The translations under genes were made by a program, and so were the position numbers. Below the pieces are notes generated by a model. That model searched no databases, had not been told where the DNA came from, and was given only the letters and a program-made list of their open reading frames with translations. A stretch of 63,897 nt of DNA, the filler included, from Perkinsus chesapeaki ATCC PRA-425 (Eukaryota > Protista > Perkinsozoa): NCBI GenBank assembly GCA_013115145.1. It is 7 parts of 7 records of this genome, joined end to end, with 100 filler letters (N's around TTAATTAATTAA, not from the genome) between each part and the next. Parts side by side here need not be neighbours in the genome. Positions count along the whole stretch, not along the records: positions 13,095 to 38,184 come from JAAPAO010000535.1; 6 more parts are not named here. One strand, 5' to 3'. This document shows, one piece after another, positions 13,095 to 38,184 of this stretch (positions within the stretch are counted from its first letter, which is position 1; every line of letters starts with the position of its first letter).

Positions 13095-13153
13095 ATGACT
13101 TGCCTTGCTCTGGTCTGTGCGGGGTGAGCCTGTGGGGCTAGAGGTGTCAGACC
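13095..13153. repeat. Dispersed ~60-bp repeat, copy 1 (related to 33898-33927 and 34063-34124)
   Basis: atgacttgccttgctctggtctgtgcggggtgagcctgtggggctagaggtgtcagacc aligns with 34063-34124. Confidence 0.8.
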
Positions 13154-13732
13154 CAATTGTATAGGGCAATTGTATGTGAGCATAATTGTAGATTCATGTT
13201 GCATTGGATGTAATACCTCCTCAACGAGACCTTCTCATGCTGCCTATTCTCCAGTGGCGTATGTCATGTTGGGTTGAATAGTGCTTCGCTATTGAGGAGT
13301 ATTCTCACAAATCAGAAATTCGATTCTGGATTCCAGAATCTGCAAGCAAGGTGAGAGCGTCGCTCTCACTCGCTCTCACAGCGAGTGTTCGGTGAGCAAG
13401 GAATGTCCGAGGCGACTACGTGAATTACTGTGCTGAGCACAGTGTGCTTGAAATCATTGTGCTTAGAACGCTATGTTGATGAATCATTAATAATGATTAA
13501 TATTTGAATCGGTCTTCTCTTCGCACTTTGAACGGTTGTCATGAATGTTGTGAATAATCCTTATACAAATGTTGAATTTCTGGGAGTGTTATTTGTTAGG
13601 CAACTTTGATCACGAAAGTAGCGAATCTGAAAGCGTAACGCACAATCTGCCAGATGCTCTCAGATTAAATCTGCAATACTGACACTGTCAGTGTAGCACA
13701 CTACTCGCACTTTGAGTCAGACCTGAGGTCGA

Positions 13733-13754
13733 CTTGTGAGTCACAAGTTGTGAC
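13733..13754. repeat. 7-8-7 scar, 8-mer CTTGTGAC
   Basis: cttgtga+gtcacaag+ttgtgac, perfect. Confidence 0.9.
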
Positions 13755-13914
13755 GACAGACGGCACGAACATGATAAGGATGTCATTTCCACAATGAATT
13801 CACACAAGACGGCCAACACTGGTATTAGTGGACCGCTACTAGCGGCGCGAGTCCCACCGTAGGACTTGAGCGAAGTTGTGGCGGTCCTACACGGCGTGTA
13901 GTACATGCTGTAGG

Positions 13915-13936
13915 CTCAGCGACGCTGAGTCAGCGT
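13915..13936. repeat. 7-8-7 scar, 8-mer CTCAGCGT
   Basis: ctcagcg+acgctgag+tcagcgt, perfect. Confidence 0.9.
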
Positions 13937-14098
13937 ACAGAGAACGAACATTGACAACTCAACAACTTGACAAGTCACCAGTGCAGCTCAAATGATACTG
14001 TAGAGATGAATGATGGAGTATTATGAATAAAGAAACTTATCAAGTAGACATATAGTACGGATATTCAGTACAGTACCTTCAGTAGTACATTGTACTAC

Positions 14099-14241
14099 TG
14101 TGATGAATGACGACGCAACACGGGAAAAGAAGATAAAACTTGATGTAGTTACAATGAGCAGACTGCAGCGATGGACATAATCGATCACACGATCGATTTC
14201 TATCAGCTAACGGGCGCGCGCGCATTCAGCGCATCATTACA
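14099..14241 (-). repeat. 3' LTR (143 bp)
   Basis: Direct repeat of 18329-18485; differs by two substitutions and one 14-bp indel. Confidence 0.95.
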
Positions 14242-14254
14242 TCCCCCCTCTCTC
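14242..14254 (-). promoter_or_regulatory. Polypurine tract
   Basis: Minus strand reads GAGAGAGGGGGGA immediately before the 3' LTR TG. Confidence 0.85.
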
Positions 14255-14268
14255 AGAGAACCGGGGTA

Positions 14269-17243
14269 TCACAACAGCTTCACGTCAATGGTGTGGACTA
14301 TGCCCTCAGAGCCATCATCGCGCTTAATGCATACTCTGTTGGTGCCTTCGCGCTTGATGACCATGGACGGCATCCATCGTCGTTGCAACTTCGGTACAAT
14401 ACCTGAAACTCTGACAAGGACCGGTAAACCCGGCTTCAGTGAATCTACTGGGGGATCACGTAACACTTCCAGGAGATACTCATAACTCTCATGACATGGT
14501 AACGGTACTTCTGGTCGCAAACTAGGCTTCAAACGGAAAATTTGCTCCAGGTCCCTTGCGAGGCGTCGCGTTATATGTCACACAGGCTCGACGAGTCTGC
14601 CGGCAAAACTCCCCGTACGTCAGATTCGGGTCCACATGGGCTCTCAGATACTCACTTAAATATCGATGCCAGCGCTCAATCTTCCCATTGCTATGTGAAG
14701 AGTGTACGGCTGTCAGTATATGCACAGTGTTCCACTTTTCGAACAGACTTTCGATGCTCTTGGCGGTGTACTGACTGCCTCGATCACTTTGGACCAATAA
14801 CGGCCTCCTCTGGAATGTATCCACCAACGATTGCAGAAGATTTTGCACATCGTCAGCGGTAGGTTGATGCAAACTAGGACGGATTGTCACGTAGCTTGTA
14901 CAACTGTCTATCGTCGTAATCAAATAGAAACGACTCATCCCAGAATCAATTCGCCGGTATGGGCCACAAATGCCTGTGTGCAACCTGTCAAACGGCTTAG
15001 GAGCGGGCTTGATACTTACAAGTGGGATCAATGGTTTATTATCACCCGGAAAGGCTTTGGCAGCAGCACAGTCGTTGCATTTGAACTGGTTACACTCTGC
15101 CGCTAAACCTGGCATGTCGATGAATTCACGCAAGTTACTGAACATGGCAGCTCTTCCCTCGTGATCGTGTGCGAGGGCCAACAGCTCGTGCGCGTGCTCT
15201 CGTGGCACAACCAGTTTATGGTCGCGTATCTCGTACTCTAAAAGGAGCTGGGCCAGTTCGTCATTGCGCTCTTCGGCGGCTCGCTCGACCGCTGATATAC
15301 AAGCAAAATCTGGCGGTTTATCGGGTACATTTTGCGGATCACAAGCCTGCAAGTGCCGTACGAACAAGTCACGCAACCCGTCAGGAAGCCTGGATGGCGC
15401 GTCTGCCTCATTCTGAGTTGAAGAGCAGTGGTGCACATGCAGAGTTATTCCAAATGACTCACACACATCATCTACTATTTGGAGCCGGCCCTCAATCGCT
15501 CCTTTGCTCATCCCGCTAATTTTACGCCAGTGCCTGCCTTCCTTTCGTGTCAACCAACTCTGGACCGAAACATTATCTGTGTACAAATGAACAACCTGTT
15601 GCTTCAGCTTGTACGCCTTCATATAATCCGTGATGATATCGAGGCCGCGTACAACGGCTTCAGTCTCGGTTATATTTATATGCCTCTTATAGCCCTTTTT
15701 TCGTAGCCAGGCCCGGTCTTCGACCTTGACCTCGCCCATGTAAAATACGGCCGGTAAACCTATAGACGAGGCGTCAGTAAATAACCTCCACTCAGCTTTG
15801 ATGTCAAACAACCATGTACCACGGCACGGATCGCCGTGTCTATAACCATCTTAACCATCCAGCAACGGGATAGTACGTTGCCAACTTGCCCGCAAAAGAG
15901 GCGAGCTCAGTCCTTGTGGAAGGAACGGCCTGCAAATCGAGTGGTACTTTCCTAGTCCAAGATCCCTCGCTGGTGATGTTTATTCCAATAACTTTGGACC
16001 CGAGCAGTGGTTGAGGTTCCTTGACTACAAACCCATCTTCTGCCAGAGTGCGGCGGACTAATGCAACATCGCGTTTGTGTACAGCCATATCATCTACGTA
16101 CTTTCGAACGGGATGAGAGAGTTGGCCGTGTACGCGGGAAATGCTGTGATCAGTACTAACCTGTAAAGCTTTCCCTGAAACCGCCAAGCCGAAACCGGCC
16201 CGTGTCATAGCGTACGTGGTGTGTCCTGGCGCGAGGTGCGGAAAAACTGCGCATTGCCAGTATTTGAGGTTCTCTGCTATATGAATCTGCATATACGCAT
16301 GCTTGATGTCTATCGCGCAATACTCGCGTGGATCCAGGGATCTCCATTTGCGCAGCTCTGACGGGCACGATACTGGACCTCCGCGGTCATTAGGACAAGA
16401 CTCGATAAGTTCGTTAAGGAACTTGTAATCTATAACAACGCGAACAGGGGTACTACGACCCAAGGACACAACCGGCATAGTAGTAACGGTTGCCTTGACC
16501 TCGCGTGGTGCAACCGGTTCGAAATAATGATTGTCAATCATGGTTTGTATGGAGTCGTGAAACAGCTGTGTTTCATGCTGGCTTAGCTTTTCTAACGTCT
16601 GTGGGTAATGCGGAACATGGCGGATAGGCGCCTGTGGAGCTACCCCATTGCGCCATAACCACGATACTCCCCACTGGTACAATTGAAAAGGATTGTTCTT
16701 GCGATCGGGGTCTGTTACAACGTGACGAGCTAAGACCATATCTTTCTCGCGCAACACCAGCGGGACAGAACGTTTGGGCGAGTTACGGGACGCGGGATAC
16801 ACTTTATCTGCTAAAGCGTACGTATACTCCCTGTTATGGCTAATTCGACTCGTCCAACCGCCATGCTCGTACCGAAAACTAATACCTCCGGTTGCTCGCA
16901 GCCAATCTAAACCGAGCAAGGCACGAATTGGTTGGCCATCAATGAATAACAAGTACTCCTTGTCTGTAACGTACGGGTACACTTGAACACCAGCCACATC
17001 TAAGACTGTGGAAATTAGCTTAGCTGCTGGAAACGAACCAGCTAGAGAATGAATAGAGGAGATGCTCGAGGAGCACTCGCTAGGGTCTAGTCCAAGGGCA
17101 ACCAAAGCGTTGCGGCAAATAAGACTAATGGATGACCCTGTGTCGATCATACCGTCGATCATCTGGACTGTCGACCCCTGGTCACACCTGAAACGGATCG
17201 ATATATACCGATGGGTATGGGTACTCAAATCACCACAGAGCAC
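14269..17243 (-). pseudogene. pol (protease, RT, RNase H, integrase), split into three ORFs
   Basis: ORFs 15840-17243 (MIDTGSS, IDIKHAYMQIHI, KYVDD), 14522-15811 (FTDASSIG, HDH..CNDC, LHTGICGP, SDRGSQY) and 14269-14532 (C-terminal SH3-like). Confidence 0.9.
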
Positions 17244-17254
17244 GACGGGACTTA

Positions 17255-18329
17255 CTTGACCGGCTGAGTTTCGCTAGCGGGTGGGTTGCGACGGACAATC
17301 AGCGGCTACATGCCCACGCCCATTACAGTTATAACATCGGACGGTGCCTCTGCCGTGGGCTCGAACAGGCTTATAGATGTCGCGGGACACAGTGTGTTAC
17401 ACACTGTGACAGTGACACACCTCCTTTACCTTTGCCTTTACCCTTGCCGGATGCTCTCCCCTTGGTATGCGCACCGTACCCCCTGTTGTTACTAGGGTAT
17501 GTAACGGCGGTGAACCCGTCAGCTGTAACAGCTTTGCATAAGTTCAGAGCATGTTCAATCATATCGCTGGTAGGACTGGACAGCTCAGACTGCCACTGTT
17601 GCCTCAGGCCCATCAGACCAGGTGTGGAGGAGGGCAGTCCACGCCAAAACTGGAGGCAAACGAAAAAACCAACGAGTTTGCTGCGTTCGGCTTCTGCGAC
17701 TGAGAAGTTCGTCGGGATACACTGTCGGAACAGTTTCTGCAGCTCAGACATGTAGTCGCCGCTGGATTCGCCCTCACAGAGAGTGCGGGAAACAGCGGCC
17801 TGCCATGTAGAAAAAATAGATGGAGCATAGCGACTGAGAAGAACGTTCTTAGCTTTAGAATAAGCAGTAGGGTCATCTTTAGCAACGCGGACGTTGTTGT
17901 CGACGATCTGAAATGGGGCACCTTCAATGTTTACCCGGAGGACGTTGTATTTAGTCGAGTCTGGCCAGTTGAGGAGACCATAAGTTTCCTCGAATTTGGC
18001 CAAGAATTCTACGACATCTTGACCTTTGTCGCCACGGAAAGGATCGATAATCTTGTAACTTCTGATGCCGGTGCTAACCTTAGAGATAGGTGGTGATATC
18101 TGGCTTGTGGAGGTAGCAGTGGTTGAAGTAGCAGCGGGGTATCAGTAGGATCGAGAGACGGGGGCGGAGGCGGAGGCGGAGGCGTGGTACCGCCAGATGG
18201 AGGAGTAGAGTCGGAAACTGGCGGAGGAGGGTCCGGGGTGTCGTCGTCGGCCAAAGCGTTGAACTCGTCGAAGGAGACGAAGGTCCTACCTCGTCCGACA
18301 GACCCAGCGACGCTGGGTCTGGGCACCAT
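17255..18329 (-). pseudogene. gag with CCHC zinc knuckle, two frameshifts
   Basis: MVPRPSVAG..; DPFRGDKGQDVVEFLAKFE; CYNCNGRGHVAADC in a third frame after a 28-nt palindromic insertion. Confidence 0.85.
18311..18328 (-). promoter_or_regulatory. Primer-binding site
   Basis: TGGTGCCCAGACCCAGCG directly after the 5' LTR CA; priming tRNA not assigned. Confidence 0.75.
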
Positions 18330-18485
18330 GTGATGAATGACGACGCAAGTTGCGTCACGCAACACGGGAATAGAAGATAAAACTTGATGTAGTTACAATG
18401 AGCAGACTGCAGCGATGGACATAATCAATCACACGATCGATTTCTATCAGCTAACGGGCGCGCGCGCATTCAGCGCATCATTACA
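18329..18485 (-). repeat. 5' LTR (157 bp) containing a 7-8-7 scar at 18342-18363 (8-mer GACGCAAC)
   Basis: Direct repeat of 14099-14241 with the extra gttgcgtcacgcaa. Confidence 0.95.
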
Positions 18486-18819
18486 ACTACAGAGTGAGAG
18501 AAACGTAGCAGCACTAACCTCGGTAAAGGCAGTACTGATCCAAATTTAATAATAAGTCTTTATTGAGCAACACTTACAAATAGTAGGGTACTACCTTGGA
18601 GGTAGTATGGGAAATTGTTATGACTTGTGCGAGTGTTTCGGATTAACGCAACAGACTAGGGTGCGTCAATGGGCACTATCAGTGAATACGGCTCTGATAA
18701 GAGCAACTGTGGGGAAGACATCCCCGGATATGCGCCTGCTTGCTCATAGCTTATATCGCTCCAGCTAAGATCGCGCGCAGAACGGCCAACATCGATCACT
18801 CCACTACGTACAGAAATAC

Positions 18820-19755
18820 ATGAATTGTGTGACACAATGTAAGGAGGCTGTCAGTACTACGGACTCGGTTAGCCAACCTTTAGCCGCTTTTTCAATTGGC
18901 CCAATTGTAAAAGGTAAACCTGAAAAAATTTTTTTCAGATGGGCCGGGCCCACCTCCGAGTTCAACGAGCAGTGTCTTCGCCGCGCCGTGGCCACCGACT
19001 CTCGCCTCTCCCCCCAACAAAGAAGCTCGTATCTCGAGGTCATCTCTAGTCTCTTCAAGAACAAATTCGTGGTCGACGCTGGCTCCGAGGTGATACACCG
19101 AATTCCTGCTATGCCTGTGTTCCGCGAGAACGCCGCCTCGACCAAGACTCGCCTGGTTCTGGACCCCTCCAAGGAGCTCAACTACCTCTGCCATACTGGT
19201 CCCGCCTTCGACAACTACATCGGTGGCACTTTGCTAACAAATCTGCATCTCAGCAGGGTATCCAAGTTCATCGTGACCGGTGACATCAGCAAGGTCTTCC
19301 ACCAAATCATCCTCTTCGATTTAGACCAAGACTACTTTGGCATGGTGGTTGGGTATGGCCGAGACCTGATCAAGGCGAAGTGGCATGTGAACTTCACATG
19401 CCACTTGGCCTTGATTCACATTGTGAAGATCTTCGGAGCTAACTGTACCCCTCTGGCCCCTAATCAAGCTCTCACCAGTTCTGTGGTCCTCGCTGATTAC
19501 GATTCTGGCGTTCTCACTCGTCAACAAGCCAGTGAGTTGGACCCTGACGTTAAGGTAGTCCTCGAGGCATTTGATACTGATAGGTCTACGTGCTCTTCAA
19601 GCTCGTCTAGCGACCCTCCTCCCCGTTTCATCCTCATGAACGTCGACTCAGACTCTGAGTCTGCATCTACGTCGATGACACTCGGTGCCGTGGCAACGAC
19701 ATCGACTCGGTTACTAAGTGCGCTGATTGTTGGACTCCGTATTGGCCAAGCATGA
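18820..19755 (+). mobile_element. BEL/Pao-like RT fragment, internally deleted
   Basis: KTRLVLDPS, GPAFDN, GDISKVFHQIIL. RT similarity stops at a 47-bp hairpin (19369-19415), before any YxDD motif. Confidence 0.75.
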
Positions 19756-21429
19756 TTTCGAGAGCAATGTCTGGACACGGTGTTCAACCTGCGTGTCTAC
19801 AATCCTCCGATTGACCCCATTAACTCTCACGACTATGAAAAAGCCTCTATCCCCGAAGTCCCTGCTGACTTGGACTTTAACTGTGGAGAAGATGAAGACT
19901 TAGTATATCTTGATCTCTAGAGTATGCATGACTATTCTTAATCTTATACTGCGTGCCTTTTTAATCGTATCTACTGTGCTGTGACTGTTTAAGTATATGA
20001 GATCATTAAGTATGTAATCAGTAGTAACACCATAAGGTGTTAGGTTCTACGGTGTGTAGAATGCTCGCCCTGAGGCGCGTGACTCTACTGTAGCACCTTA
20101 CTTTGTGGAGAGCGCTAGGCTCGTGAAACGGTTCAGCCGTTTCATCCTAGTATAAGCTGTATACAACTCAGATTAGAGTCTTTTTTGTGATTCAGTTCGT
20201 TCGACCTACTCGTTCGTTCTCCCTCCGATCTAGTCATTTGGAAGCAGCAGCCTTCCTACTGAGCAACTCGACAACCCTTTGCATCTAGTTCTACTACTTG
20301 CGTTCTTAGTCCTCAACACCTAGAACAACACGATCTACACCTAGACTACCCAAATTGGGTGGTATAGATAGCGGATTCCGCTGTGTCATACTATGGTTTG
20401 TGTCCATAGTTGGCACTTTACTGAGCAGGATCATTCGCTGCAGTTTGCGATCCCTTATACATTAGGATACCCACCGTCGCGCGCAGTGTTCACTGTCGTA
20501 TTGCATTACATGATGCCCAGACGCATACTAAACACCAGTCAGGTTCATTCCAAGAGGTCATTAAGGATGATATCGAGAACGATGATGATCCCGAAAAGTC
20601 TTCTCCATCTGGTGGTAGTGGCGTTGGTGATGGTTCTTCACCAAAGAAGGCTGCTGTACCAGTTGACTCTCAGGAGAGTCATCGTAAGACGGCCAAGTCA
20701 TTCGATTTGGGGTAAAAGTTTCACGGAACCCAGAGCGGGAGCTTGGAGGTTGAGTCGTATGGAATAGCCATTTGGTTCTCTAATAGCAGTGGTATCAGTA
20801 TCGTTTGCAGAATACCAGTGGTCAAGCTTATTACCAATAATGTGAGGTGTGGTGTATCCGACCCTTAAGCTTTCCAGCTTGGGGCCGATGTTCTGTGCGA
20901 ACATAGGTTTGGGAATACACGTGCTCTGGGGTCTACTCCGGGAGAGAATCGTCATATGTGACTCAAATCGTCACATAATGTGACGTATTGCTTACCTGAG
21001 GTAGCTAGAGCCTCCCGTAAATCATGGGGCTGGCTATCTTGTATGTGTTTTTGAGCCGCTATCTGGTGTTGATACGGTTGGATCTACTTGGCGAGCGAAA
21101 GATGGCTCACCGCTGATTGCCACGGCACTCCACTTGACTAAATCGGTCTGACGAAAAATCATTGAATTCGTCATATTGAAAGAATAATTGAGAAAAATCG
21201 GTAGGTCGTATATTCTGTAAGGGGTTTTATTAAGATTATAATAACACAATAATGAGTAGATAAACTGAAACGTTGAGTAATCATCATCATCAAACACACA
21301 ATTTAAAGTAGTAATAACGAGGTACTAAGACAACAGCAGAAGTAATAATATGAGTGGAGCACTGGTATTAGTGGTAGTAATGCAGTGGTAATAATATGAG
21401 TGGAGCACTGGTATTAGTGGTAGTAATGC

Positions 21430-24402
21430 TCGTAGTATTATTGTCGGGTAAATTGTATTTTATGTATTGTTAATTGCTCTTGATATTTAGATAATGCTCT
21501 TGCTTTCACTAGATCAGATATAGCATAATATAATATACACCAATGATTACGCCATGTTGTCAAGTTCTTCATACATGTAGCATGACTTTGAGGGAATTTA
21601 TGCCATAAATTAGGATGAGCGTAACTGATAATAATAAATATATTATAAGTAAGCATTATCTACTATTACGTGCATTCACGACTATTTAACCATCTCTTAT
21701 CAAATAATTCTTCACATAGACATGATGATGATGATGATGAAGTCGATGATCCTGCTACTCCTGCTCCTGCTTGTGTCCTAGTTTTTTTCGCATCCCCATT
21801 CAAACCCGTTTCTGTTGCTAATGCACATAATACCACAGATTTAAGCCCACATGTACCTACTGCAGCTGCTGCTGTTGCTGCTGTTGCTGCTGCTGCTGCT
21901 GCTTGTTGTTGTTGTTATGTATTAATATTACCTGGTATATTATTCATTATACGTTCTTCTTCTTCATATGATATACCTCTACAATATATATAATCATTTG
22001 GTTCTGATAATACAAATTGCATCCAACCACCAATATCAGACGATGATGTATCATAAACCCTATTATTAATATTAATATTATTACTATTATTATCATTACC
22101 TTGGGCCATCTAAAGTATATTTATTATACCATTCTTTACTAGTGCAATTAGGTGGTATACCTCTTCTTGTTTTCTCAGATAAATGACTAAAGGGGCAGCC
22201 AGCCATATCCCCAGCAAATCTATTAGTAATACCAATATAACATGGTGGTAGTTGCTGTTATTATTTTTATTACATAACATCATTCCGTGATATGGTCCAT
22301 TTTCTCATTACATATCTACCTAATCTATCGATACTTGCTAAATCATCTCTACCAGATAACCCATATCTAAATTAAGGGTTATAATAATAATATCATTATT
22401 ATAGCAGTATTATTATTATTACTTATCCAATTCCTTTTCAAATTTAGTTAATAATGTATCATTTACACCAGCATAAATAATTAAACATCCTTTATCTTCA
22501 ACATGTAATTGATAATAGTCACCTTCACTATCAATATGTATTAAATGATATAACATATTATTATTATTATGGGACATCGTCTTGGGCTTATGACATCGGC
22601 TGCTATGCCTCCACCACCGCTGCCCATTATCATCATCCTCTTCTTCTTCTTTTTGTGTGGATGATGATGATGATGATGTTATAACAGGTATAGCATCACT
22701 GAACCATTGCCATAATCTTTGTATATGTGATGGTAATATAGTTGGAAATAATACTATACCATCTGGATTACTCTTAGGATCATATCTAATAATAATAATA
22801 CTACTACCAGTTGTAAGTGTATTACACTGATAATTGTTTCAATGATGTTTGTAGATCAATACCAACACTACCGTATCTACTATGTACTGATAATTTATTA
22901 TTATTCTTGATAATAATAATAATCATTATTACTTTCTATATCCAGTATTATCATCAATAATAGTTGATGATAATCTTTCTTGTTCAACAATTGTTATTTT
23001 TAATAAATATAACATCCTTTCTAATGGTTCATCACCAACATTATCATCTATTACTATTGAATGTAAACAACGACGACGACGAAGAAGACAATCTTCATCA
23101 TCTTCATCATCATTAAAATTAATAGGATTAGTAGTAGTAGTACTACTACTACTACGACTGCTGCTGCTGCTGCCCCCTAAGTCTTGTGGTGGTGGATCTT
23201 CTTCAATCCTGATCAGCAGGAGGAGCATCATCATCATAGATCTCGTAATAATAGTCAATGTTATTATTACGTTATAAACCTTCTTGATAGGAAATGTTGT
23301 ATCTGTCTATTTTAATTATAGTTACTATTGTTATTATTATTATTACCTTATCAAAACAAGGATGATCTAATAGTGCTTGTGTATCAAATGGTAAATCGTT
23401 AATTGCATTATTAGGTACTCCTTCTTGTTGTAAGGATGATGATGATGTTGTTGTATGATTATTGTTAATATTACTAAATAGTGTTAATGATAATCCACTA
23501 CTACTACCATCATCATCATCACTAGCACTACTATCCAGGAATAAATCAGGGGGATATATACAACTAATAAACATATTATTAATAATACTACTTGTCATTA
23601 TTATTACCTTTTATTATGATGATAAATTGAACATTGTGGATCTATAAATATAGTATCTTGATGATGTACTATCATAGGCTAATAATAATAACATTGTATA
23701 TAAGAGGTATATTATTATTATTATAACTACATATAGATTAGATTCATATGATGCACCATTATAAGCAGTAGCATATATAGTTTCATATAATAATGATAAT
23801 TCATCCAACAATCTAACAACAGTAATAATAATAACACCACCAATAACAACAACAACAGGTCAATGATCATGTATTACAGTCTTTTTCCGTTCTCTTCTAG
23901 TAATTTCTTATATTCCCTTTCACGTTTATCATTATTATTATCATCATTGGTATTATCTAAATTATTATCCTACTCATTATCCTACTCATTATTATCATTA
24001 CTACCAGCAATACTTCCAATTCCATCCTCTTCCTTATGATGTCCATCGTCCATCTTGTCTATATTTTTGTTATTATGCCCATTTATCTAATAATATTATT
24101 AAACATAATAATATTACTACTCCTACTATCACATCTGCCTCCTCCTCCTCCTCATTATTATTATTATATCCAAATAATATATCATCATCATCGGATAATT
24201 CATAATATTCATGAAACATATCATAATAAGGCATTCTTCTTGCCTTCTGTTTATTAATAATACCATCATAATCACAACCACCATCGTTATTCTTCTTCTT
24301 GCTGTCTCTACCAACTACTACCACATCATCAACACTACCACCACCTTCGGCAACAGCAGCAGCAGCAGCCGCAGCAGCAGCATCAGCTTGTTCTTGTTGT
24401 TG

Positions 24403-24434
<32 letters not shown>

Positions 24435-27400
24435 CAACATTAACGCTACTAACCTGATGATTATAAATAGTATGTATGTATGATGGTTAGTGTTGTTAGT
24501 GTTATTATTACACCAATTGATAAATCATAACCTTTTAATGCATCTAATATAAATCCCATAAATAATTTAACTTTCAATCTACGATAATGTGTTGTTGGTG
24601 CTGCTGCTGGTCCTTGGTCACTGTTAATAGGGAAGCTATGATGGAATGTTATCTAAAACAACAACGATAATAACAATAATAACAAGGTTACTGGAGTTAT
24701 TTCCAAATCACTGCCGAATGTATTGAAAAATGCATTTTTATCGGCTGTTGATTCGCTTACATGTCAACGTGTGGCTAGTACTAGTACTATACATATCGTT
24801 AGACGTGTATTGGGGGGCCCTCATGTGGGCATATAATAAATGGATGTTAAGGTCATACTGTTTGCTTTTGCCGCAGTATTGATCTGATAGTTGGTAGAAT
24901 TTATTTTTATTGACTATCATACCAGCTTAGGCTGTGCGTCCGACATAATAATAATGATAATAATAATAACCTTTATTATTATTATTCTAAATTATTCTTA
25001 CTTCGACACTTTCACCGTTTTTAGCTTTATCTAATAAACCAGATTTATATAATTTATCATAGGCAAATCTAAGATAATGATCTTAATGATCTATATTATT
25101 AATACTTATTACTTAATTATATTATCTATTCGTTGTAATGAATCATTATTAGTATTAAGTGTCCATGTTAATGATAATATATTATTATTATAACCAACTG
25201 TATGGGGTAATATACCTTTCATTATATTATCTTTCAAATATATACCAATATCCTAATAATAATAATGATAATAAATAGCAATAATAATTATATTTATTAT
25301 TACATCACAGTGATGTTCATAATATATACCAAACACTTTAATTATAGCTATATTTATTGGGAATCCATCTGGTATACAATTATATAATAATGGTATATTA
25401 TTAGTACTAGTTATATCTACTATCAATATTTACAACTATAAGAATGATAATACCCATATTATTACTACCTTTTGACACCACTAAAACACCACCACTATCA
25501 TTATCATCATCATCATTGTTAATGGTCATGCTTGTTCTTGGTGTTATATTATTATCATCGCTACTACCTTCTATTATAGATACCATATATTTACGTATCC
25601 TGCCATTATTAATACATATTATATATCCTATTATTATTATTACTTGCACATATTATTAAAATCATCGTTTGTTAAATATGCAACACCATTATTAGTATTA
25701 ATTGATAAACCTTTAAGTCTCCCTAATTTACCATTTATATATTCATTTATTTTAATATCTTTAACTTTATGAAATGCTAATGTTTGAGCATTTATACATT
25801 CTTTTATTGGATTATATATACCATCATAATAAACCTCATCATCATCATCCTGCTTATCCTCACCCTTTATCGCATCAAAATCATAATCATAATCATCATC
25901 ATCATTTGAGTTGTTCTTCTTCTTGTTATTATCAGTTGTTGTTGTTGTGTTAGAGATTATTGGTTGTGAATCAATAATAATATCATCATTATCCGATATT
26001 CTATCTTGACCCATGATACTACTACTACTTCTTCTACTGCTGGTGCTGGTTTAAGTGATAACTAAATAATATTGAATAATAATAATAATAACAAAACAAT
26101 AACTAATAAGCATCATCTTATTTGGATAACATCATCACTCTTATCATCATGAATATAATGAATTCTTCTTGTTATTATTATTATTGTATAATACAATTAT
26201 AACACACTTTTTTATTATTACGACTTACCTTATCACCATAATCATCATCATCATCATCCGCATCCATCACCTCATCATCATGATGATAATCAATAATAGT
26301 ACTATCCTCATCATCGCATCCCCCTACTTCTTCTATTGCTAATATATCTTCTTTACTACTATTATTCACATCTTTATCAACGTTATTATCAACAACACTT
26401 GATAACAATACAGGTGGAGGAGGAGGAGGATGTGCCAGATCATCATCATCATCATCATTGTCATCATTATCATTGTCTTCTGCTGTTTCTTCTTCTTCTT
26501 TTATATTACTATATACATTAGTTGTATTCTTTAATTTATTTATCATATTATATATAATTACATTATTAACATTATATACCCCATCACAGACATCATAATA
26601 ATAACAACAAGAAGAAGAACCATCATCATCAGCATCATCATCATCATCAGCACGACCACGACCACGACCACGACCACCTTTACTATCATCCTCCGAATGT
26701 CGTAATGTTGAAGATGGTGATGATAATAATAATGATGATATGGCTTTGTTGTTCTTGTTGTTATAATATTTACCATTATTATTATATTGTAATTCATTTA
26801 TTAATATATTTAATATATTATTATACATATTATCAAATGACCTGCTATAACATCATTATTATTATTCTATATATTATTATTACTGTCTTGTATTATTATC
26901 TAATAATAATCTATTATTTAATAACATTACATGACCACCATTAACTTGCTCCCATAATTTACGTCTCTCTATCTCATAATCACGATAATCAGCTATAATA
27001 TCCACAATACTACTACTATCATCATCATCACCAGGAGGAAGAGGATGAGGATGACGCTCAACATCATGAGTAGTATCATTATTACCTAGTATTATTAATA
27101 TAAATATTATCAAATATTATTACATATTCTAGCAAGGGGTGTGTTGAAAGGTGTTATTATTGATGATGATGATGATGGCGTCGAGGAGGAGGAGGTGTTG
27201 GCGCTGGATTCTTCTTGTTCTTGTTTATTATTATCCTCCTGCTCTTTAATATACATTATTGTATTATTATTATATATATATCTTATATCCTTTCTTTTAT
27301 CATTTAAGGCTAGTGATGATGGAGGAGGAAGCGGAGGTAGCATAGTAGTATTACTTCTTGTTGTTGTTGTTAACATAATGATAATATATACTATTATTAT
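21430..27400 (-). CDS. One or more low-complexity, intron-rich AT-rich genes of unknown function
   Basis: Plausible spliced exons such as EGDYYQLHVEDKGCLIIYAG, YGLSGRDDLASIDRLGRYVMRKW and VYDTSSSDIGGWMQFVL, separated by (AAT)n-like GT-AG introns. No family recognised. Confidence 0.4.
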
Positions 27401-27650
27401 TAATTAATATTAACACCACTTATTAGACTATTATACATCATTACCATATTATCTATAACAACAACAGCACCACCACGAAAAAGGAAGAGAGGAAGGGTGG
27501 AACGATAACAAGGACAACAAGGACAACAAGGAGGAGGAGTATGGTGAATAAATAATGATGATGATGATGCTGTTGCTGCTCTTCTTCTTGTTATTATTAC
27601 TTATCCCTTTTACCATATATTCTTGATAATTCCTTTTCCAAACATGTTAC

Positions 27651-28898
27651 CTAATAATAAATGTTATTATAATCATTTGTCCCCCTTATTCTTGTTATTA
27701 CAAATTTAACTGTATTATGTACACCTAATGTATTTACTGGTAAGAACTTTGGTATATTATTTAAATCCAATACATATGTAAAATGTGCCCCCTGATGGCC
27801 AGCAGCATCAGCATCAGCATCATTATAAGATATTAATGATGTTATCATTTGAACACTTAAATGTACATAAGTAGCAGTTCTACCTTTATCATACGGTAAA
27901 TCATATAAAGGCTTGTAATCAGCTAAAAAATACAGACAAAAACAACAATAAATATAAAAATGAGGTTATGTTGTTATTCACTTACATGAAGCTATAATGA
28001 AATGCTTATCTATATTATTAACACTACCCTGATCCTGCTGATCCTGCTGTTGCTGCTGGTTATCTTGTGGTGATGGTGGTGGTGTATAACACATTCTTAA
28101 TTCTCTTAATTCAGGTTTAAAATATGGTATAGGACTATAGTATTTAGTAGATAGTGCATGGCATTCTAATTTACTACTAGTATTATGTAGTATATTTAAT
28201 GATGGCATAGTAATATTATTATCAATAAAATTAACTGATTCAACTAAATGATTCCAGTCCTTTTGATCTCTTTTATCATATAATGTATTATATACCTCAT
28301 TAACCGTATATTCTGGAAAATCACAGTCCAATCTACATAGTTTACCACCATCATCCATATTACGTACATTAGCTTTAATATTACGTAATTTACTAAATCC
28401 ATTAATAGATCCACTACCATTATTTTGTGATACCCATCCTGGCATACCAGTCACATCATATAATGGTGTACAATAATTAACTGCTTTATTATATACACCC
28501 AATAAGAAGTCATCACTTAACGACGCTGATGATGACGACGACGACGACGACGATGGTGATGAGTATAAACGAGGTGATGACGACGACGACGATGGTGATG
28601 AGTATAAACGAGGTGATGATGACGATGGAGGAGGAGGAGGAGGAGACTTAACTGCTACTACTGCTGAGGCTGCTGCTGGTGCTGGTGGTGGTGATGATGA
28701 TATTACATTGTTGTTATTATTAGTATCGGTGGTGATAGTAGTAGTAGTTGTATTATTATTATCTTCATTATCATTACAGGTAGTATAATCATCATCTCCA
28801 TCATCTCCATATAATAATAATGTTGATGATGATGATGATGATGTTGAGAAGTATGGTAGAGCTGATTGATGACTTAATGATCTACTGACACTAAACAA
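27651..28898 (-). CDS. START/SRPBCC lipid-binding domain protein with Ser/Thr/Asn-rich N-terminal region; multi-exon, limits uncertain
   Basis: CRLDCDFPEYTVNEVYNTLYDKRDQKDWNHLVE, YYSPIPYFKPELRE, HFIIAS and FTYVLDLNNIPKFLPVN follow the START pattern. Confidence 0.6.
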
Positions 28899-29624
28899 AG
28901 CTAAGGACGACTATAATATTATATATTACCTATTAATAGATACTGATGATGATGTTGTTGTTGCTGCTGTATGTTGCTCTTCATATTTCCTTTTATTATA
29001 TACTGTTATTTCACCTTGTGATTCATGTCTACGTCTATGTCCCTGTCCTTCTTCATGTAATATATGACTATATTAATAATTCTAGTATTACTCATAATTA
29101 TTATTACCAGTTATTATAACAATTCTGTTGCTGTTGTCCATATATCATTGTATATCTACCCGCCCCCCTACCACCACCACCGCCACATGCCCCCCTATCT
29201 TGCCTACCCCCACATGTATTATACAATAATCTTGATAAGGATAATCTTGAATTGGATAATATTGATGTTCTTGCTTTATTATCATCATGATACTCGCCAC
29301 CACCACCGCTGCTGGTGGTGGTGGTGTTGTTATTACTATTAGTTATATGGTTGTTTGTTGTTGAGGTTGTTGTTAATGATGATGATGCAGGAGGAGCAGG
29401 AGGCATTGCTATTGTTAATATACTAAACATTATTTATATAACTATTAAACACAATACTTATAAATAATAATAACTAGTACTACTACCATAATTATTAATA
29501 TATTAACCATAACCATAATATATTAACCATAACCATTAATAATAGTGTAGCCGACTAGGCCACACATGTACAATATTAATACTACTTAATCCACAAACCC
29601 ACCCCCACCGCCATCTCATTCTTC

Positions 29625-30571
29625 TTAATACACTGTTTTAGTGAAGTCTATACGTCTTGTCTTAATCATAGTCCATACATGTCTATTCCATACACTAATA
29701 CTGAATAACCATACTAATGCAGCAGTTGACATCTTTAAACCCTAACAATAACAACACTAATAATACACAATTATTATTATTATTACTATTAATTTCCTTT
29801 CATCATGTTGTGGATCTTGTGCCCATGTTAGGAATTGTGTTACATCTTTAGCCATTTGTGATGCTACTGCAGGTGTACCATCTTCATATTCAATAGCACC
29901 ATCATTTAATGGTGGTGGCATAGATATAGCACCACCAGGAAAATATGTATTGTAATATAAACCAGATCTAAGATTAACACCAGCAGGTGGATCTCTATAT
30001 CCAGTTAATAATGACATAATATAATCACAACCACCATGATGAGCTGCTGCCTGTTGTGATAGATCTGGTGGTGATGCACCTTGATTAGCAAATCTAGCAG
30101 CTTCCTCATTTGGGTAGGGTGATGGAAAGGGATCTAATAGATTACCTGGTCTAGTAAACATTTCACCTAATAATAATATTTAATAATATATCACTAAGTA
30201 TATGATCATCACCTTTATCATTAGGTCCATCTTCATAATCAAAACTAGCAGCTATTTGTTTAACACGATTTTCTGGATATATCTAAACAATAGTATTATT
30301 ATGTATTATATATCATGACTATTACAGTATTAACCATATGCCTAAAACATACAAACTTGGCAGCATGACAAGTTGCACATACTTGTCTATATACTTCATA
30401 TCCTCTACGACAAGATGGTATATCATGACAATGTGAGAATGCTTTAAACCAGAATGGCCAATCTGGTGGTGATGGTGGATCCTTTTCAGCACATTTAGAT
30501 AATATAATACCACAACAACTACCACCAATAATACCAATAATACCATAACCACCACCTTTGATAACCAGCAT
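29625..30571 (-). CDS. CYC1: Cytochrome c1, heme protein of complex III (4 exons)
   Basis: [66 protein letters not shown]-terminal TM and TRRIDF..*. Confidence 0.95.
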
Positions 30572-30807
30572 TATTATTAACAACAAAGAAGAAGACCCTA
30601 AACAACAAGATACACAACAACAACAACAACGCCGAACAAGGAAGGGCCAGTAAGGAAGATAATAATCGATTATAATGGCGTAGCGATATTAACACAGTAC
30701 TACGTCGTAGCCCATACTACTACTACGCCCTTTCCGCGACTGCTCGGGGCTGCTGCCCTAATATTTGAATATTCTTTTTCCAGTACCTCTTGTAGTAGTT
30801 AGTAGTA

Positions 30808-31876
30808 ATGTCTTCTAATAATGTTGGGAGTGATGTTGGGAGTAATAGTGATGATGCTGGATGTGTTATTAATACTGAATGGGAGAGTTGGGAAATAGAT
30901 CCAGATGATATTAAAGTAATAATAAGATTATTCAAGTTATATGATACCTTAAATAGATTGAATATCGTTGTGGTAGTGGTGTTACTGCTGAAGTATTTTA
31001 TGGTTTATGGAATGGTACTGCAGTTGCTGTTAAACAAATAAGATTAGGTGGTAAAAGAACAGATAAATTAATAAGAGCATTTAAAAGAGAATTAAGTATA
31101 ATGGTTAAATGTAGACATCCTAATTTAGTATTATTTATGGGTGCTGCTACTAAAGAGGAACCAATAAGAGGTAATAACAACAACACTTAACTACTACTTG
31201 ACAATATCATTATTATTAGTTGTATGTGAATTCTGTGAAGGTGGTACTTTATTTGACTTATTACATAATAGAGATGATGTTAAATTATCATGGTAATATC
31301 AATAATATTAATAATATTAATAATATATATATTATTAGGAAACAGAAGTTAAAGATGTTAATTGATATTGGTAAAGGTATAACATATCTACATGCATGCA
31401 AACCACCTATTGTACATAGAGATTTAAAATCGCTTAATTTATTATTAGCTGAAAGAGTTGATGATGAATATGATACACCTATAATGAAAATAGCTGATTT
31501 TGGTATGGCTAAAATTAAAGATGATTCTAATCAAGATATGACTGCTAATGCTGGTACTTATCATTGGATGGCACCAGAAGTATTAGGTGGTAAACAATAT
31601 AATGAAAAAGTTGATATATATAGTTATGGTATAGTTATGTATGAAATATTATGTAGAGTTATACCATATGAAGAGACTGGTTTAGAAGCAATGAAAATAG
31701 CATTAGCTGTTAATAGAGGTAGGAGACCTGATTTAAGTAGATATCCATACGATGGTCCTGAACAACTTAAAAATATTATGATTAAATGTTGGGATCAAGA
31801 ATCTAATAATAGACCAACCATGTCTGAGGTAGTTGATCAATTAAAGACTGTTAAAATACCTGATAATAATGCATAA
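30808..31876 (+). CDS. Tyrosine-kinase-like (TKL, Raf/MLK-type) protein kinase
   Basis: WEID, GSGVTAEV, VAVK, RELSIM..CRHPNLVLFMGA, HRDLKSLN, DFG, GTYHWMAPE across three introns. Confidence 0.92.
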
Positions 31877-31897
31877 CCATGATAACCATGACATCAT

Positions 31898-32128
31898 CAT
31901 CGTTGTTAATAATAAAGGTATTGAGTNNNNNNNNNNNNNNNNNNNNNNNNNNNNNNNNNNNNNNNNNNNNNNNNNNNNNNNNNNNNNNNNNNNNNNNNNN
32001 NNNNNNNNNNNNNNNNNNNNNNGAGTGTCATCGTTGTTAATAATAAAGGTATTGAGTGTCATCGTTGTTAATAATAAAGGTATTGAGTGTCATCGTTGTT
32101 AATAATAAAGGTATTGAGTGTCATCGTC
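31898..32128. repeat. 31-bp tandem repeat spanning an assembly gap (N 31927-32022)
   Basis: Unit gagtgtcatcgttgttaataataaaggtatt, identical copies on both sides of the gap. Confidence 0.9.
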
Positions 32129-32268
32129 GTTGTTAATCATAACATAACATTAACAATAATGTCATGAAACTTGTATAACAATAAAACTCCGTAAAATTAT
32201 TGATGGCAAGTACGCCAATAACATCATTAACTACTTAGTAAAATAGTAGTATATGTTGTTGTTTATTA

Positions 32269-33427
32269 TTAATCCTCATCATCAGTACTAATATTATCTA
32301 TGTTGTTCTTGATAGGTATATATTTAGTAGTTCTATAACAAAATGGTGGTATACCTTTAATATCTTCAATAATATCATAATTACCACCTAATTTACCTAA
32401 TAAAGATTATATAATCCTGTTATTATTATTATTAAATAATACGTATATTCCTTTCCTTTAAATGTTGCCATCCTTTAGGATTAGCCCTTCTTAGATCATA
32501 CGCTAATCCAATATAATACCTAATAATACTACTACCTATATATTAATATATATTATTATTACATAATATCAATAAATATCTTAGTTGGATTATATTGTTT
32601 AAATGCATTCATTTCAGCAGTTGAATAATCCCAATCAAATGTATGATGCCAATTATGCCAACCTTCACCCAATGCAAAGAATGCCACAATACCGTTCTCA
32701 GTAGTATTACTATTAATATCATATGGTTTATAACCCCATTTATGCACAATTGAATTAACAGACCATGTGGCATGTAATACAAAACAATAACGGAATATAC
32801 CAGGTAATAATATACCATTAATAATAGTCTCATTCCATAAATAATAACCAATTAATGATGGAAATATAAAACACCATACCATATTCCACCATGGGCACAT
32901 ACGGTGTTGGAATAATAATAATTTATCTTTATATAAATCATTTAATGATATTTGTCTACCAGCTTTTAATACAATATTAGGTTTTTTAACCAATAACCAG
33001 CCAACATGTGAATAAAAGAACCCTCTCTGTGAATCATGTGGATCTTTATTAGTATCAGAATATAAATGATGTGTTCTATGATCTCTAGCCCAATGTATGA
33101 CACTACCTTGATTAGCAATACTATTACATATTAATAATAATATTTTTAATGGATATCTAGCTTTATATGATCTATGAGACCATAATCTATGCGCACCAGC
33201 AGTAATACCTAAACCTGATATTATCCATAATAATAATGTCCATATATATGTGTATATATTATATCTATTATTAATAATAACATCATATATAGTATATATA
33301 CCAATAATATGTATCTAGTATAATAATAGATATTCATAATAATGATGTTATATATTACTATTGATATATATATTATCATTGGCCAATTCATTATTAATTT
33401 ATCCCTTACTACTGTATTATCATCCAT
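32269..33427 (-). CDS. SCD: Delta-9 acyl-CoA desaturase (multi-exon)
   Basis: GITAGAHRLWSH, DHRTHH, DPHDSQRGFFYSHVGW and GEGWHNWHH histidine boxes. Confidence 0.93.
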
Positions 33428-33897
33428 TATAAGAGGACTGATAAAAGAACAACAACACCAACTACTACTATGAAATAAACAAATAGAACAACAACACCAA
33501 CACCCTCATGATGACAATGAGCAGCAGCATCATCTTTACAGTAGTAGATATCGATCATTTGGGCGAGCGAAATGTTAATCTTTATGTGGACGGTCTCGGT
33601 CAAAATCATTGTTCTAAGGAAAGTACACAAAACCTAAGGAAACATTCTCGCTTGCCCACAGTGATATAAATCTAAGGTGAGGAAGTCAGGTGTAGGAAAC
33701 CCCCGTCGAAACGAAGTCACCGAAGGTTCATCCGTCAACGTTGAGTTAAGCAACTAGACTCGCAGCTCAGCGTTCGGAGTATGCTTGCCGAAGGCAACTT
33801 TTTCAACTTGTTCTTGCAACTTGTCCGTCAACTTTTTTCTTGCATTAGGCAACTTTTTTCTCGCGGGACACAAAACTTTCCCTAGCCCTGCAGGCAA

Positions 33898-34142: not shown

Positions 34143-34164
34143 CATGGAAGTTCCATGATGGAAC
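34143..34164. repeat. 7-8-7 scar, 8-mer CATGGAAC
   Basis: catggaa+gttccatg+atggaac, perfect. Confidence 0.9.
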
Positions 34165-34333: not shown

Positions 34334-34654
34334 TTATTCTTTCCTCTGTGTACAATCTGGGCAGAACCTACAAAGACAAACCTAGCGTTTCGCTGTCGCT
34401 GTTTTATGCGCATGCCAATCAGAGCATTGACTGCCAACTCACCACTCGCCCTCCGGTACTAATTCCAGATTTAAACACTCCAAGTGGAACCAATCGTCAC
34501 ACTGAGAAGAAGAAATTATTCTTCGTGAATGGTGCACGGTGCCGTCACGGCACTGCCGTAAGCAGTCCCTTGCCCCAAGTCTCAGTCCATCACATCCGAT
34601 GAGGATTTTGCCTGGAAGGTTCCATTGCCCATGGCATACGGGGCAGCTCCCCAT
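34334..34654 (-). CDS. PHD-finger (C4HC3) coding exons, 3' end of a spliced gene
   Basis: Splicing a candidate GC-AG intron (34502-34573) and a GT-AG intron (34368-34442) gives CPVC..IGCDGLRLGCDDWFHLECL..PEGEWFCPDC..*. Confidence 0.75.
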
Positions 34655-34680: not shown

Positions 34681-34830
34681 ATTCGATGTATGAGTATTAT
34701 GTGTATGAGTTTACAGTGTATAGGTATTTTGTGTACGAGTTGAAAGTGTATTGGTTTTCGGTGTACGGGTCGTAAATGTACGAGTATTCGAGACATGAGT
34801 CGAAGGTGTACGAGTTTTCGGTGTATGGGA
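34681..34830. repeat. 10 x 15-bp degenerate tandem array
   Basis: Conserved RTGTAYRRGT 10-mer alternating with variable 5-mers, exact 15-bp period. Confidence 0.9.
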
Positions 34831-37800
34831 CATGAACACCCCCAATGAATAAGGCACTCAACTTATCAGCAGCATAGTTGCGCTTCCAAACAGTATCACC
34901 AACCTTCAATTGATCATTATGAGGGCGTCGACCACGACTCAACTTGCGACGAACTTCAGCACGACGTTCCAACCAAAGCTCCTTTGAATGACTCAAAGAG
35001 CGTGCCCATTCTTCCTGACAGTCATCACTAATACGCTTAATGTTATCAGTCAGGTCTTGAAATAAAAGCCCACTTCCAAGCCAGTCTTGAACCTGCTCAA
35101 CCATATCAGGTTCTTCTCCAAGGATACAATCTGTAAGACCTCTAGAAGCCCTGCAACAAAGCCAAGGGCTTAACCTACTATCCTCAGCATCTGAGTAAGG
35201 CAAACAGTTCATTGTAAAACATGCCAAACTACACCATTTTCGAACATCATTCATATCCTTCATAGTATTTTCCACTTCCAACTTAGTAGCTCTCAGTAAC
35301 GCACCAAATTCAGCATGGCATCTCTCAATCCATCCTCTTTGCGCAGCGTCGTAGGAATTAGCATGAGCTTGTACAATATGATACCGGGCCAAGACATCCT
35401 TGAACGACGTAGCCATAAAACATTGACCTTGATCATGAACGACCAATCGAGGAATACCTTCTTGTGCTAAAATTTCCACAAAACCAGCAGAGAGGGTGAA
35501 CCCACAACACGTATAGCCACCAATCTTGTTATATAACAAACAGCAATAAGAACCCAACATTTGGACTGGTTCTGCAACCGAATAGGTCCAAATAAATCCA
35601 AACCAACAACACCCCAAATCATAGGAATAAAACCTTTTATAGTACCCATAGCCTTGGACAACATTTTTCCTTCTTTAACTTGAGCACAAATCGAGCACTG
35701 TAATACATATCGCTTTACAGCACAATATAAACCTTTAAACCAACCATATCGTCTCACCAGCTTAACCATTCTGGATATCCCAGGATGGCTAAAAGATAAA
35801 TGTACTTTATCTATCAATTCTTCTTGCAATTCAGTAGTAGGAATAACAGGTACCAGATCATCATCACCATCTCTACGAAATTGTCGAGCCAATAAAAGAC
35901 CCATAGACGAGTCTAAAGCGAATGACCTAACAAGGGTACTTCCGGTATGTGAGCGCAATTCAGCAGCTACATGAACACAGAATGAATCCCCTGATTGAGT
36001 CAATAAAACTCGATTGCGAAACTCAGGATACCAAGAAATAGTGTCAACTAAGGCACATTCTGGCATTCGAGAACAATCAATCAAGGATAACTCATCATCT
36101 ACACAGTCCCATCCTTCAGAGTCAGATAATACCATAGAGTCTCCTCTAAAGGTAACTACTGGATCTTCCTCTACTTGACCAAAAACTAATTCCCAATCAC
36201 CAGGAACCATACTTATAATATCACCAGGACGAGTCAAACGATCAGCTAAGTTACTAGCAGACCTTACATGTTGAAATATCAATACCACATCAGGAATATA
36301 ACGCCTTATACTGCCAACCAAATCACAAATATGTTGAAGTCGTCGATACTCTGGTTTCGGCAATTCTTCAACCTTTTTAGAATCCCTATCAGTTAAAACC
36401 CATCTCAATCGATGTAAAGCAATAGTGCTATCACTAAATACGGTTATGTGCTTTATAAGGGTAACACTGATACTGACCAGACGTTCCAAAGTCACCATTG
36501 CCAACCTCAGTGATTCCAATTCACGAAGCGGTATAGACCCATGACCAGAAGTAATAATCTTAGATTCCACTCGACGACCAACACGATCACGTATGTCATA
36601 GGACATGCAAGTTTCACTGGCATCCGCATAAGCCCAAATACAACCAATATCAACAAAACGAGGCAACAATAAACGATCTGAATCCAGATATTGACAACAT
36701 CTAGCCAATTCAGTCTTAACAAATTCTTCATCTGGAGCTTGCAGCTGAACACCAAGTGCAGCATTTACACCATGACCATATCCTTTCTCATGTAAATATT
36801 TCATCATACATCTTAGTTGTAATGTAACTTCTGATAATAAACCCAAAGGATGATATATTCTGGCTGTAACACTCCTGAGAGTATCCAAACTCACACCACC
36901 ATTATCAGAAATACTCAAATCTGGTATTTTCACATCCATAACATCAGTATCAATATCAATAAATTAGCGATATCCCAACCAGGAACCAATACGAGCTTCA
37001 GCCACTTGTGATAATAACCGTGGTTCACCAATTGCCTCCCCCCTCACAAGTAAATTGTGAGTTCGTTTGAGTTGGTTAACCAGGAACCCTCTTTTAGCAA
37101 GACGTTCTTCAACAATAGCCCTTGATGCTTCCACATCCTCCACCTCATTGCCGAATATTATCAGATCATCGACATAATAGTCTACCGGTAAGCTTTCATT
37201 ATTAATAAACAAAGATTCTCGAATAGCATAAGATAGCGCCCAGGGTGAAAAGTTGGTACCAAACGGTACTCTAGCCCATCGGACCACCACCACACGATCT
37301 TTCAAAGGTAATAGTAGCCACAAATACCTCTTATCCCGGCCATTGATACATACTTGCCAGAACGCTTTGCTCAGATCCTCAGCTGAGACTCTACAATAAG
37401 AACGCCATTTCATCAATGTCCTCCATAAATTCATAGAATCAGTAGAATCACCAGGTGGACAATTAAACATATAAGTATTAATAAATCGAGCATCCAAGCA
37501 TAACCGACACCGTGTCGAAACACGAGAACAATCTATTACAGGTACCACATTCATATAATACGAAGCAAATGAAGAAGGATCCTCGCCATGATATACCTCT
37601 ACTACATTAGCCGATAATAATTCTTTAACAGCAATCTCATAAGCCTCATAAGACTGTTTATCCTTCAAAAATCGCGCAACCATGCGTCTACCACGATGTA
37701 AAGCAGACTTGTAATTAGGAGTAGGTCTAGCTTCACTCTTCCAAGGTATATCAACCTCAATTCTTCCAGGTACGATATCATTATCACCAGTGTCCACCGA

Positions 37801-38184
37801 TACCTCATTACAATCGACCATATCATCAGCAGAATTACCACAAACAGTAGAGATATATTGAACAGACACTCCAGATAATAAAATATCATCTTTACCCTCC
37901 TCAGATGACATCAACCCAATACATCCTTCCAACACCTTAGGTAAAATAAATTTATACCTAGGGTTATCCAATACATAACAATTCACATGACGCACCAATT
38001 CTGTTGTAATAGCAACAGGAACATCATAAATAATACCCAACACACCACAATTAGTACCGTCCACCATATTAACACCAATATCACAATGACAGATTACCAA
38101 GTCTTTTTTTTAGTCTTCTCCCTCTTGCCGGAGAAGATTCACCAAATCTCTCGCAATAAACACATCACTAGCACCAGTATCCAC
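34697..38184 (-). mobile_element. BEL/Pao-like pol (RT-RH-IN) with one stop and one frameshift; 5' end cut by the contig edge
   Basis: DLSKAFWQV, RVPFGTNFSP, YVDD, YADASE..SK..SIPLRELE, FSDSTIAL, NLADRLTR, H..H..CSIC, GLDLFGP, HDQG, WIER. Confidence 0.88.

Follow-up and report, generated by a model that had tools for sequence, protein, structure and literature searches.

Cut-and-paste transposons of the hAT type, such as Ac/Ds, Hermes and hobo, leave excision footprints with an 8-bp target duplication in which the base that adjoined the transposon is replaced by its complement, and the 22-bp scars described in this report are alike in both respects. In Ac/Ds footprints, P nucleotides form palindromes centred on the complement of the transposon-adjoining base (PMC5873905); in yeast the arms of such footprints reach up to 20 nt, and microhomology joins are found in 85-100% (PMC5873905). 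The target preference of Hermes is nTnnnnAn (PMC10368747). P-nucleotide palindromes, microhomology joins and nTnnnnAn are further points of likeness between hAT footprints and the scars (PMC5873905, PMC10368747). The experimental hAT systems yield many types of footprint, whereas in Perkinsus a single outcome is enriched, in which the full 8-mer is present in inverted form and nothing is lost.

Other systems share some of these traits. The V(D)J coding joints made by RAG, and Transib, resemble the scars in that covalent hairpins on the flanks, opened off centre, give palindromic additions. The nick made by RAG and by Transib falls exactly at the border, and the palindromes that result are even, whereas the Perkinsus scars have a single unpaired centre base together with an 8-bp duplication. 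Short template-switch mutations, or quasi-palindrome mutations, are similar to the scars because adjacent sequence is copied in inverted form in one step. Their lengths and switch points vary between events, unlike those of the scars, where the length is fixed at 8 and a step of 1 nt occurs at both turns. Muta1 also makes 8-9-bp duplications and flank hairpins and is repaired by use of the duplication (PMC5499845), but its excision is mostly precise, and neither a 1-nt offset nor nTnnnnAn has been reported for it.

The sequence examined here is the whole of record JAAPAO010000535.1 (25,090 bp, in record orientation) from assembly GCA_013115145.1 of the clam parasite Perkinsus chesapeaki, which occupies positions 13095-38184 of the window, i.e., of the whole analysed stretch of 63,897 nucleotides; coordinates are those of the window unless a P. 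olseni locus is named. The more interesting point to emerge is a dense class of scars with a single geometry in two Perkinsus species, of which we found no description in the literature searched, while the pair of long terminal repeats (LTRs) that differ by one such scar is, taken alone, a modest observation.

Element A and its two LTRs

The record is composed of two kinds of DNA that contrast sharply in composition and change over at about 21000 and about 33500. Its two ends (13095 to ~21000, and from ~33500 on) have a GC content of ~50% and consist of retroelement debris, whereas the middle, at 24-35% GC, carries host genes (Table 1). Element A, nested in older retroelement DNA (13095-14093 and 18491-21000), is an LTR retrotransposon of the Ty3/gypsy order on the minus strand. 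Like other elements of this type it has TG...CA LTRs, a 5-bp duplication, a primer-binding site (PBS), a polypurine tract (PPT) and the domain order PR-RT-RNaseH-IN, and it differs from them in its very short LTRs (143 bp). The domains were recognised on the minus strand by Pfam as PR (PF13650), RT (PF00078), RNase H (PF17917) and IN (PF00665), with the integrase scoring above the gathering score and the other three below it, and polyproteins of 960-1435 aa that match collinearly bear out this order. The element is defective, with one frameshift in pol, revealed by tblastn against seven uninterrupted relatives, and with gag spread over two frames.

Since the PBS adjoins the LTR at the higher coordinates, the PPT adjoins the one at the lower coordinates, and the pol domains run PR-RT-RNaseH-IN on the minus strand, the high LTR is the 5' LTR, in agreement with the assignment made in an earlier note on this DNA. 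Element A was inserted at the edge of an odd palindrome (14080-14100) that was already there. No third copy of its LTRs occurs in the record, and the annotation does not call the elements as genes. In a search of 5.8 billion proteins, the close relatives of element A were solely partial P. olseni models with 64-78% identity, and exact scans of metagenome contigs with an LTR 24-mer and a 21-mer spanning the PBS/LTR junction gave no match.

Table 1. Positions, in the window, of the features of JAAPAO010000535.1 that bear on the scars (W, the 8-mer gacgcaac)
Feature	Position	Strand	Remark
22-bp scar, one mismatch	13324..13345		motif scan
22-bp scar, one mismatch	13428..13449		motif scan
22-bp scar, one mismatch	13476..13497		motif scan
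22-bp scar, perfect	13733..13754		motif scan
22-bp scar, one mismatch	13887..13908		motif scan
22-bp scar, perfect	13915..13936		motif scan
Target-site duplication ACTAC, left copy	14094..14098		identical to 18486-18490
3' LTR, element A	14099..14241	-	143 bp, TG...CA, short (unscarred) form
8-mer W, gacgcaac, single unscarred state	14112..14119		3' LTR, followed by acggg
Polypurine tract adjoining 3' LTR	14242..14254	-	reverse complement purines only
Internal region, gag-pol coding capacity	14242..18328	-	Pfam matches, tblastn, ORF list
Odd palindrome, 11-nt arms, 1-nt centre	18299..18321		overlaps inner PBS end
Primer-binding site, TGG..., adjoining 5' LTR	18311..18328	-	16 nt common to P. 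olseni relative
5' LTR, element A	18329..18485	-	157 bp, TG...CA, long (scarred) form
Scar, w1-7 + revcomp(W) + w2-8	18342..18363		5' LTR U5, 14-bp net insertion
Target-site duplication ACTAC, right copy	18486..18490		sequence read
Host genes: cytochrome c1, TKL-type kinase, desaturase fragment	low-GC middle		exon ORFs searched singly, exons unjoined
22-bp scar, perfect	34143..34164		downstream of second retroelement's integrase
22-bp scar, one mismatch	34539..34560		motif scan

Alignment of the two LTRs shows substitutions at two positions (14127/18371 and 14183/18427) and a single 14-bp indel, so that the earlier note was right to count only two substitutions apart from the scar. The substitution at 14183/18427, with CG in the 3' LTR and CA in the 5' LTR, is of the type produced by deamination at CpG. 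Both readings given for the indel also hold: the 3' LTR has gacgcaac directly before acggg, while the 5' LTR has, 13 nt from its PBS-abutting end, gacgcaa-gttgcgtc-acgcaac and then acggg, exactly as had been read. The middle 8-mer of the scar is the complete reverse complement of the W of the short LTR, and its end bases are the complements of those lost from the left and right copies of W, which bears out what had been said of the central bases. Because acgcaa stands on either side of the middle 8-mer, the alignment leaves the placement of the insert ambiguous by 6 nt. By chance, about 1e-4 perfect 22-mers with this structure would be expected in 25 kb, and none arose in 100 simulations.

The direction of the change can be read from a P. 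olseni relative of element A, found on a 3.65-kb contig (L007) and 67-77% identical to it at the nucleotide level in gag and pol. This contig starts with its own 171-bp 5' LTR, followed by the same PBS as in element A, and both a three-way alignment and direct reading find the identical 8-mer there once, unscarred, at 14 nt from the end of the LTR (13 in element A). With both this outgroup and element A's own 3' LTR unscarred, the 22-bp form is the derived one, and the most economical history would be that the 5' LTR gained it once. The earlier claim that the long LTR arose by insertion is thus upheld by the outgroup, and its claim of recency stands as a relative bound: the divergence between the LTRs, 1.4% or two differences in 143 bp, limits the age of the insertion and of the scar in relative terms only, and the perfect state of the scar is uninformative on age because 22 bp are too short. 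That LTRs are identical at integration, the premise of this dating, is a good rule, not an absolute one. In the model of retroviral reverse transcription, an error made during plus-strand strong-stop synthesis is carried into both strands of the 5' LTR and leaves the 3' LTR unmarked, so that the premise, which the note had taken as established, holds as a rule and fails as an absolute.

Scars of one geometry in two Perkinsus species

A motif scan of the record for 22-mers composed of the first seven bases of an 8-mer, its full reverse complement and its last seven bases returned nine, against an expectation of 0.00 from 100 composition-matched simulations; four are perfect (13733, 13915, 18342 and 34143) and five have one mismatch. 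The 1-nt-offset hairpin geometry invoked in the earlier note for the LTR scar is matched exactly and belongs to this strongly enriched class. With 8-mer lengths of 5-12 and offsets of 0-2 scanned, the enrichment is limited to length 8 with offset 1, all the other combinations being at background. Since the nine 8-mers are all different, the scars of the record are independent events. Every one of them lies in GC-rich, transposon-derived DNA, with none in the 12.5 kb of host-gene DNA. Six, with six different 8-mers, fall within ~600 bp of non-coding retroelement flank (13324-13936), where their density far exceeds that of the remainder of the record.

In P. olseni, five scars are present in the 21-kb locus L003, which carries the orthologous kinase, five in the paralogous L005, and one in the 1.5-kb L001. 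These add eight distinct sites and bring the total for Perkinsus to 17 distinct sites in ~74 kb, whereas none is present in the control, a locus of 21 kb (L006) from a compact eukaryote that is unrelated. The structure is present in four independent assemblies of the two species, and some of the P. olseni sites are intergenic and outside any LTR. The segments L003:900-3450 and L005:13440-15970 represent one repeat, 97% identical, with all their scars in common; as both copies keep every scar, the scars are real, heritable and stable over that divergence. This pair of copies yields neither a gain nor a loss of a scar. The scar of L001 falls inside the span of a gene model that was built on an element A relative. 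Comparison of this scar with element A, as a second before/after pair, was unsuccessful because the flanking stretch aligned too poorly.

A covalent hairpin with a 1-nt offset predicts palindromes with a 1-nt centre, and exactly such palindromes are in excess. The counts, sorted by the size of the centre and set against simulation, cover perfect palindromes whose arms measure 7 nt or more. At 13095-21000 there are 22 with a 1-nt centre (0.49 simulated), none that are even (0.30 simulated), and one with a 2-nt centre (0.37 simulated). The corresponding counts for 1-nt, no and 2-nt centres are 13:1:0 and 20:3:1 in the P. olseni loci and 4:2:0 in the control. About half of the odd palindromes fall outside the 22-mers, and their arms are as long as 14 nt (19378-19406). 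With this one, those at 17388-17408 and 14080-14100 make three perfect odd palindromes outside the 22-mers whose arms measure 10-14 nt. Another, at 18299-18321, overlaps the inner end of the PBS, so that the PBS is trailed by its own complement; it is missing from the P. olseni relative of element A and could be another mark of the hairpin type, at a distance of 20 bp from the scar in the LTR.

Origin of the scars

We consider it probable, though well short of certain, that excision of a hAT-type cut-and-paste transposon left the 22-mer as its footprint in the 5' LTR, and did so after element A had integrated; the identity of the agent, the route of repair and the placing of the event after integration are what we infer. 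The transposon would have inserted into gacgcaac in U5 and thereby duplicated it, as an 8-bp target duplication. On excision, the transposase would nick 1 nt into each flank, and the 3'-OH of the flank would close a hairpin on the opposite strand, so that of the two strands of each flank, one would retain 7 nt and the other 8. Host enzymes would then open the two hairpins, each at a distance of 8 nt or more from its tip, leaving two 3' tails, each with an inverted 8-mer, that would be mutually complementary over exactly 8 nt. Annealing of the tails through these 8 nt, with trimming, fill-in and ligation, would give w1-7 + revcomp(W) + w2-8, a product in which nothing would be lost and nothing would be untemplated. 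Annealing between the direct copies instead would restore the 8-mer; as that would leave no trace, a single visible outcome would be the one enriched.

The case for hAT rests on the geometry, which needs an 8-bp duplication and the loss of one base from a strand at each junction, the signature of hAT transposition. The scars contain two copies of the 8-mer, each without its inner base, and palindromic additions that are centred on the complement of the transposon-adjoining base, at offset 1 only. Moreover, the 8-mers at the scar sites match the target preference of Hermes, the LTR site in one half only: among the 34 half-sites of the 17 distinct 8-mers, 18 have T at position 2 or A at position 7 (p = 4.4e-4 uncorrected, ~0.007 when corrected for 16 tests). 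No credible element with inverted ends and an 8-bp duplication was found in the 25-kb record or in 42 kb of P. olseni, a small sample in which the candidate matches for inverted ends were all of low complexity or part of a large inverted duplication. The Perkinsus loci examined gave no match to the Pfam domains of hAT transposases (BED finger, DDE core, dimerisation), and a literature search returned no paper reporting hAT in Perkinsus. Footprints with 1-3 P nucleotides, the commonest in experiments, are not enriched here, so that repair would need to be unusually uniform; over the range of 0-6 P nucleotides per side, what was found was at background level or consisted of microsatellite artefacts.

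The six scars per 600 bp at 13324-13936 represent a high density for independent insertions and excisions, which counts against the hAT reading. This clustering, together with the location of all nine scars in transposon DNA, the single repair outcome and the donor that was not found, would fit a process aimed at transposon DNA in place of the random traces of a selfish transposon, either a domesticated, hAT-like, hairpin-forming enzyme by which repeats in Perkinsus are cut time after time, or an undescribed route of break and repair. We regard such a process as quite unlikely; if it were real, it would mean a genome-wide 14-bp mutational signature in Perkinsus. The donor that was not found in the record or the 42 kb of P. 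olseni and the absence of the short canonical footprints would also suit an origin free of transposons, namely a templated error in which a polymerase switched to the complementary strand and back, during replication, break repair or the reverse transcription of this very copy of element A. Such a switch accounts for any single scar equally well, and an insert that is confined to the 5' LTR and sits in U5 at 13 nt from the PBS has the pattern of a plus-strand strong-stop error. Yet a template switch gives no reason why 17 distinct sites should share a length of 8 nt exactly and a step of 1 nt at either turn, a 1-nt loop is impossible by snap-back, and the sites have a transposase-like target bias. 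As identical scars occur at intergenic P. olseni sites outside any LTR, reverse transcription in particular is an unlikely origin, and templated error as a whole seems to us unlikely. Footprints of another superfamily with 8-bp duplications, e.g., Mutator-like or Merlin, likewise receive a low probability. In their favour, Muta1 gives 8-9-bp duplications and flank hairpins (PMC5499845), and P. marinus has Merlin-related genes with an intact DDE motif, Merlin duplications being 8-9 bp (PMC8101967). However, the hairpin product of Muta1 is 43+43 nt, no offset being reported for it, and its excision is mostly precise; the Merlin copies of P. marinus have yielded neither ends nor duplications (PMC8101967); and the nTnnnnAn bias with palindromes centred on 1 nt is the hAT signature.

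Two further alternatives concern the LTR pair itself. The 22-bp form might predate this copy of element A, both LTRs having had it and the 3' LTR having later lost 14 bp precisely, with the 6-nt direct repeats acgcaa serving for slippage or for microhomology-mediated repair. These repeats, 14 bp apart, bound the scar, and their recombination restores the 8-mer exactly; precise repair that depends on the duplication is known for Muta1, with more than 90% precise events in yeast (PMC5499845). We nevertheless hold this history to be improbable: given the unscarred 8-mer of the P. olseni relative, it needs two events instead of one, and precise losses of scars appear to be rare, because the 2.5-kb P. 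olseni repeat has retained all of its scars in both copies and five of the nine scars in the record have lasted long enough to gain one substitution. That the 14-bp difference is an artefact of assembly or polishing is very improbable indeed. Between the P. olseni copies there are indeed numerous 1-bp indels of the sort expected from long-read noise, but such noise does not produce exact templated inserts of 14 bp, nor would it place identical structures in two diverged copies and in four independent assemblies of two species.

If hAT-type excision is indeed the origin, Perkinsus genomes hold a dense and recognisable record of cut-and-paste transposition, amounting in this record to about one scar per 1.5 kb of repeat DNA. 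The LTR pair with its outgroup would then be a clean before/after case, in which the process was active after a recent insertion of a retrotransposon, and the stereotyped outcome would hint at the repair of hairpin-capped breaks by annealing through the 8 duplicated bases. The scar motif would also be an easy marker with which to survey transposon activity and to polarise indels in Perkinsus population data.

Surroundings of the scars

A second retroelement (34697-38184, minus strand) is truncated by the end of the contig and has matches to reverse transcriptase and Integrase_H2C2, along with a weak match to a Pao-type peptidase. Two of the 22-bp scars sit in the non-coding DNA just downstream of it. 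In the older GC-rich DNA around element A there is also an ORF of 311 aa on the plus strand (18820-19755), which is without a Pfam match and is probably a decayed retroelement.

No tRNA genes were found in the record. The host genes at 21000-33500 contain many trinucleotide repeats of the poly-Asn/Gln/Asp type, and directly past the kinase gene there is an assembly gap of 96 N at about 31930-32030. In the P. olseni locus L003, two copies of the kinase/desaturase segment lie inverted to each other within 8 kb (L003:4609-7176 and L003:10132-12694), and both arms have 69-82% identity to the one copy of P. chesapeaki.
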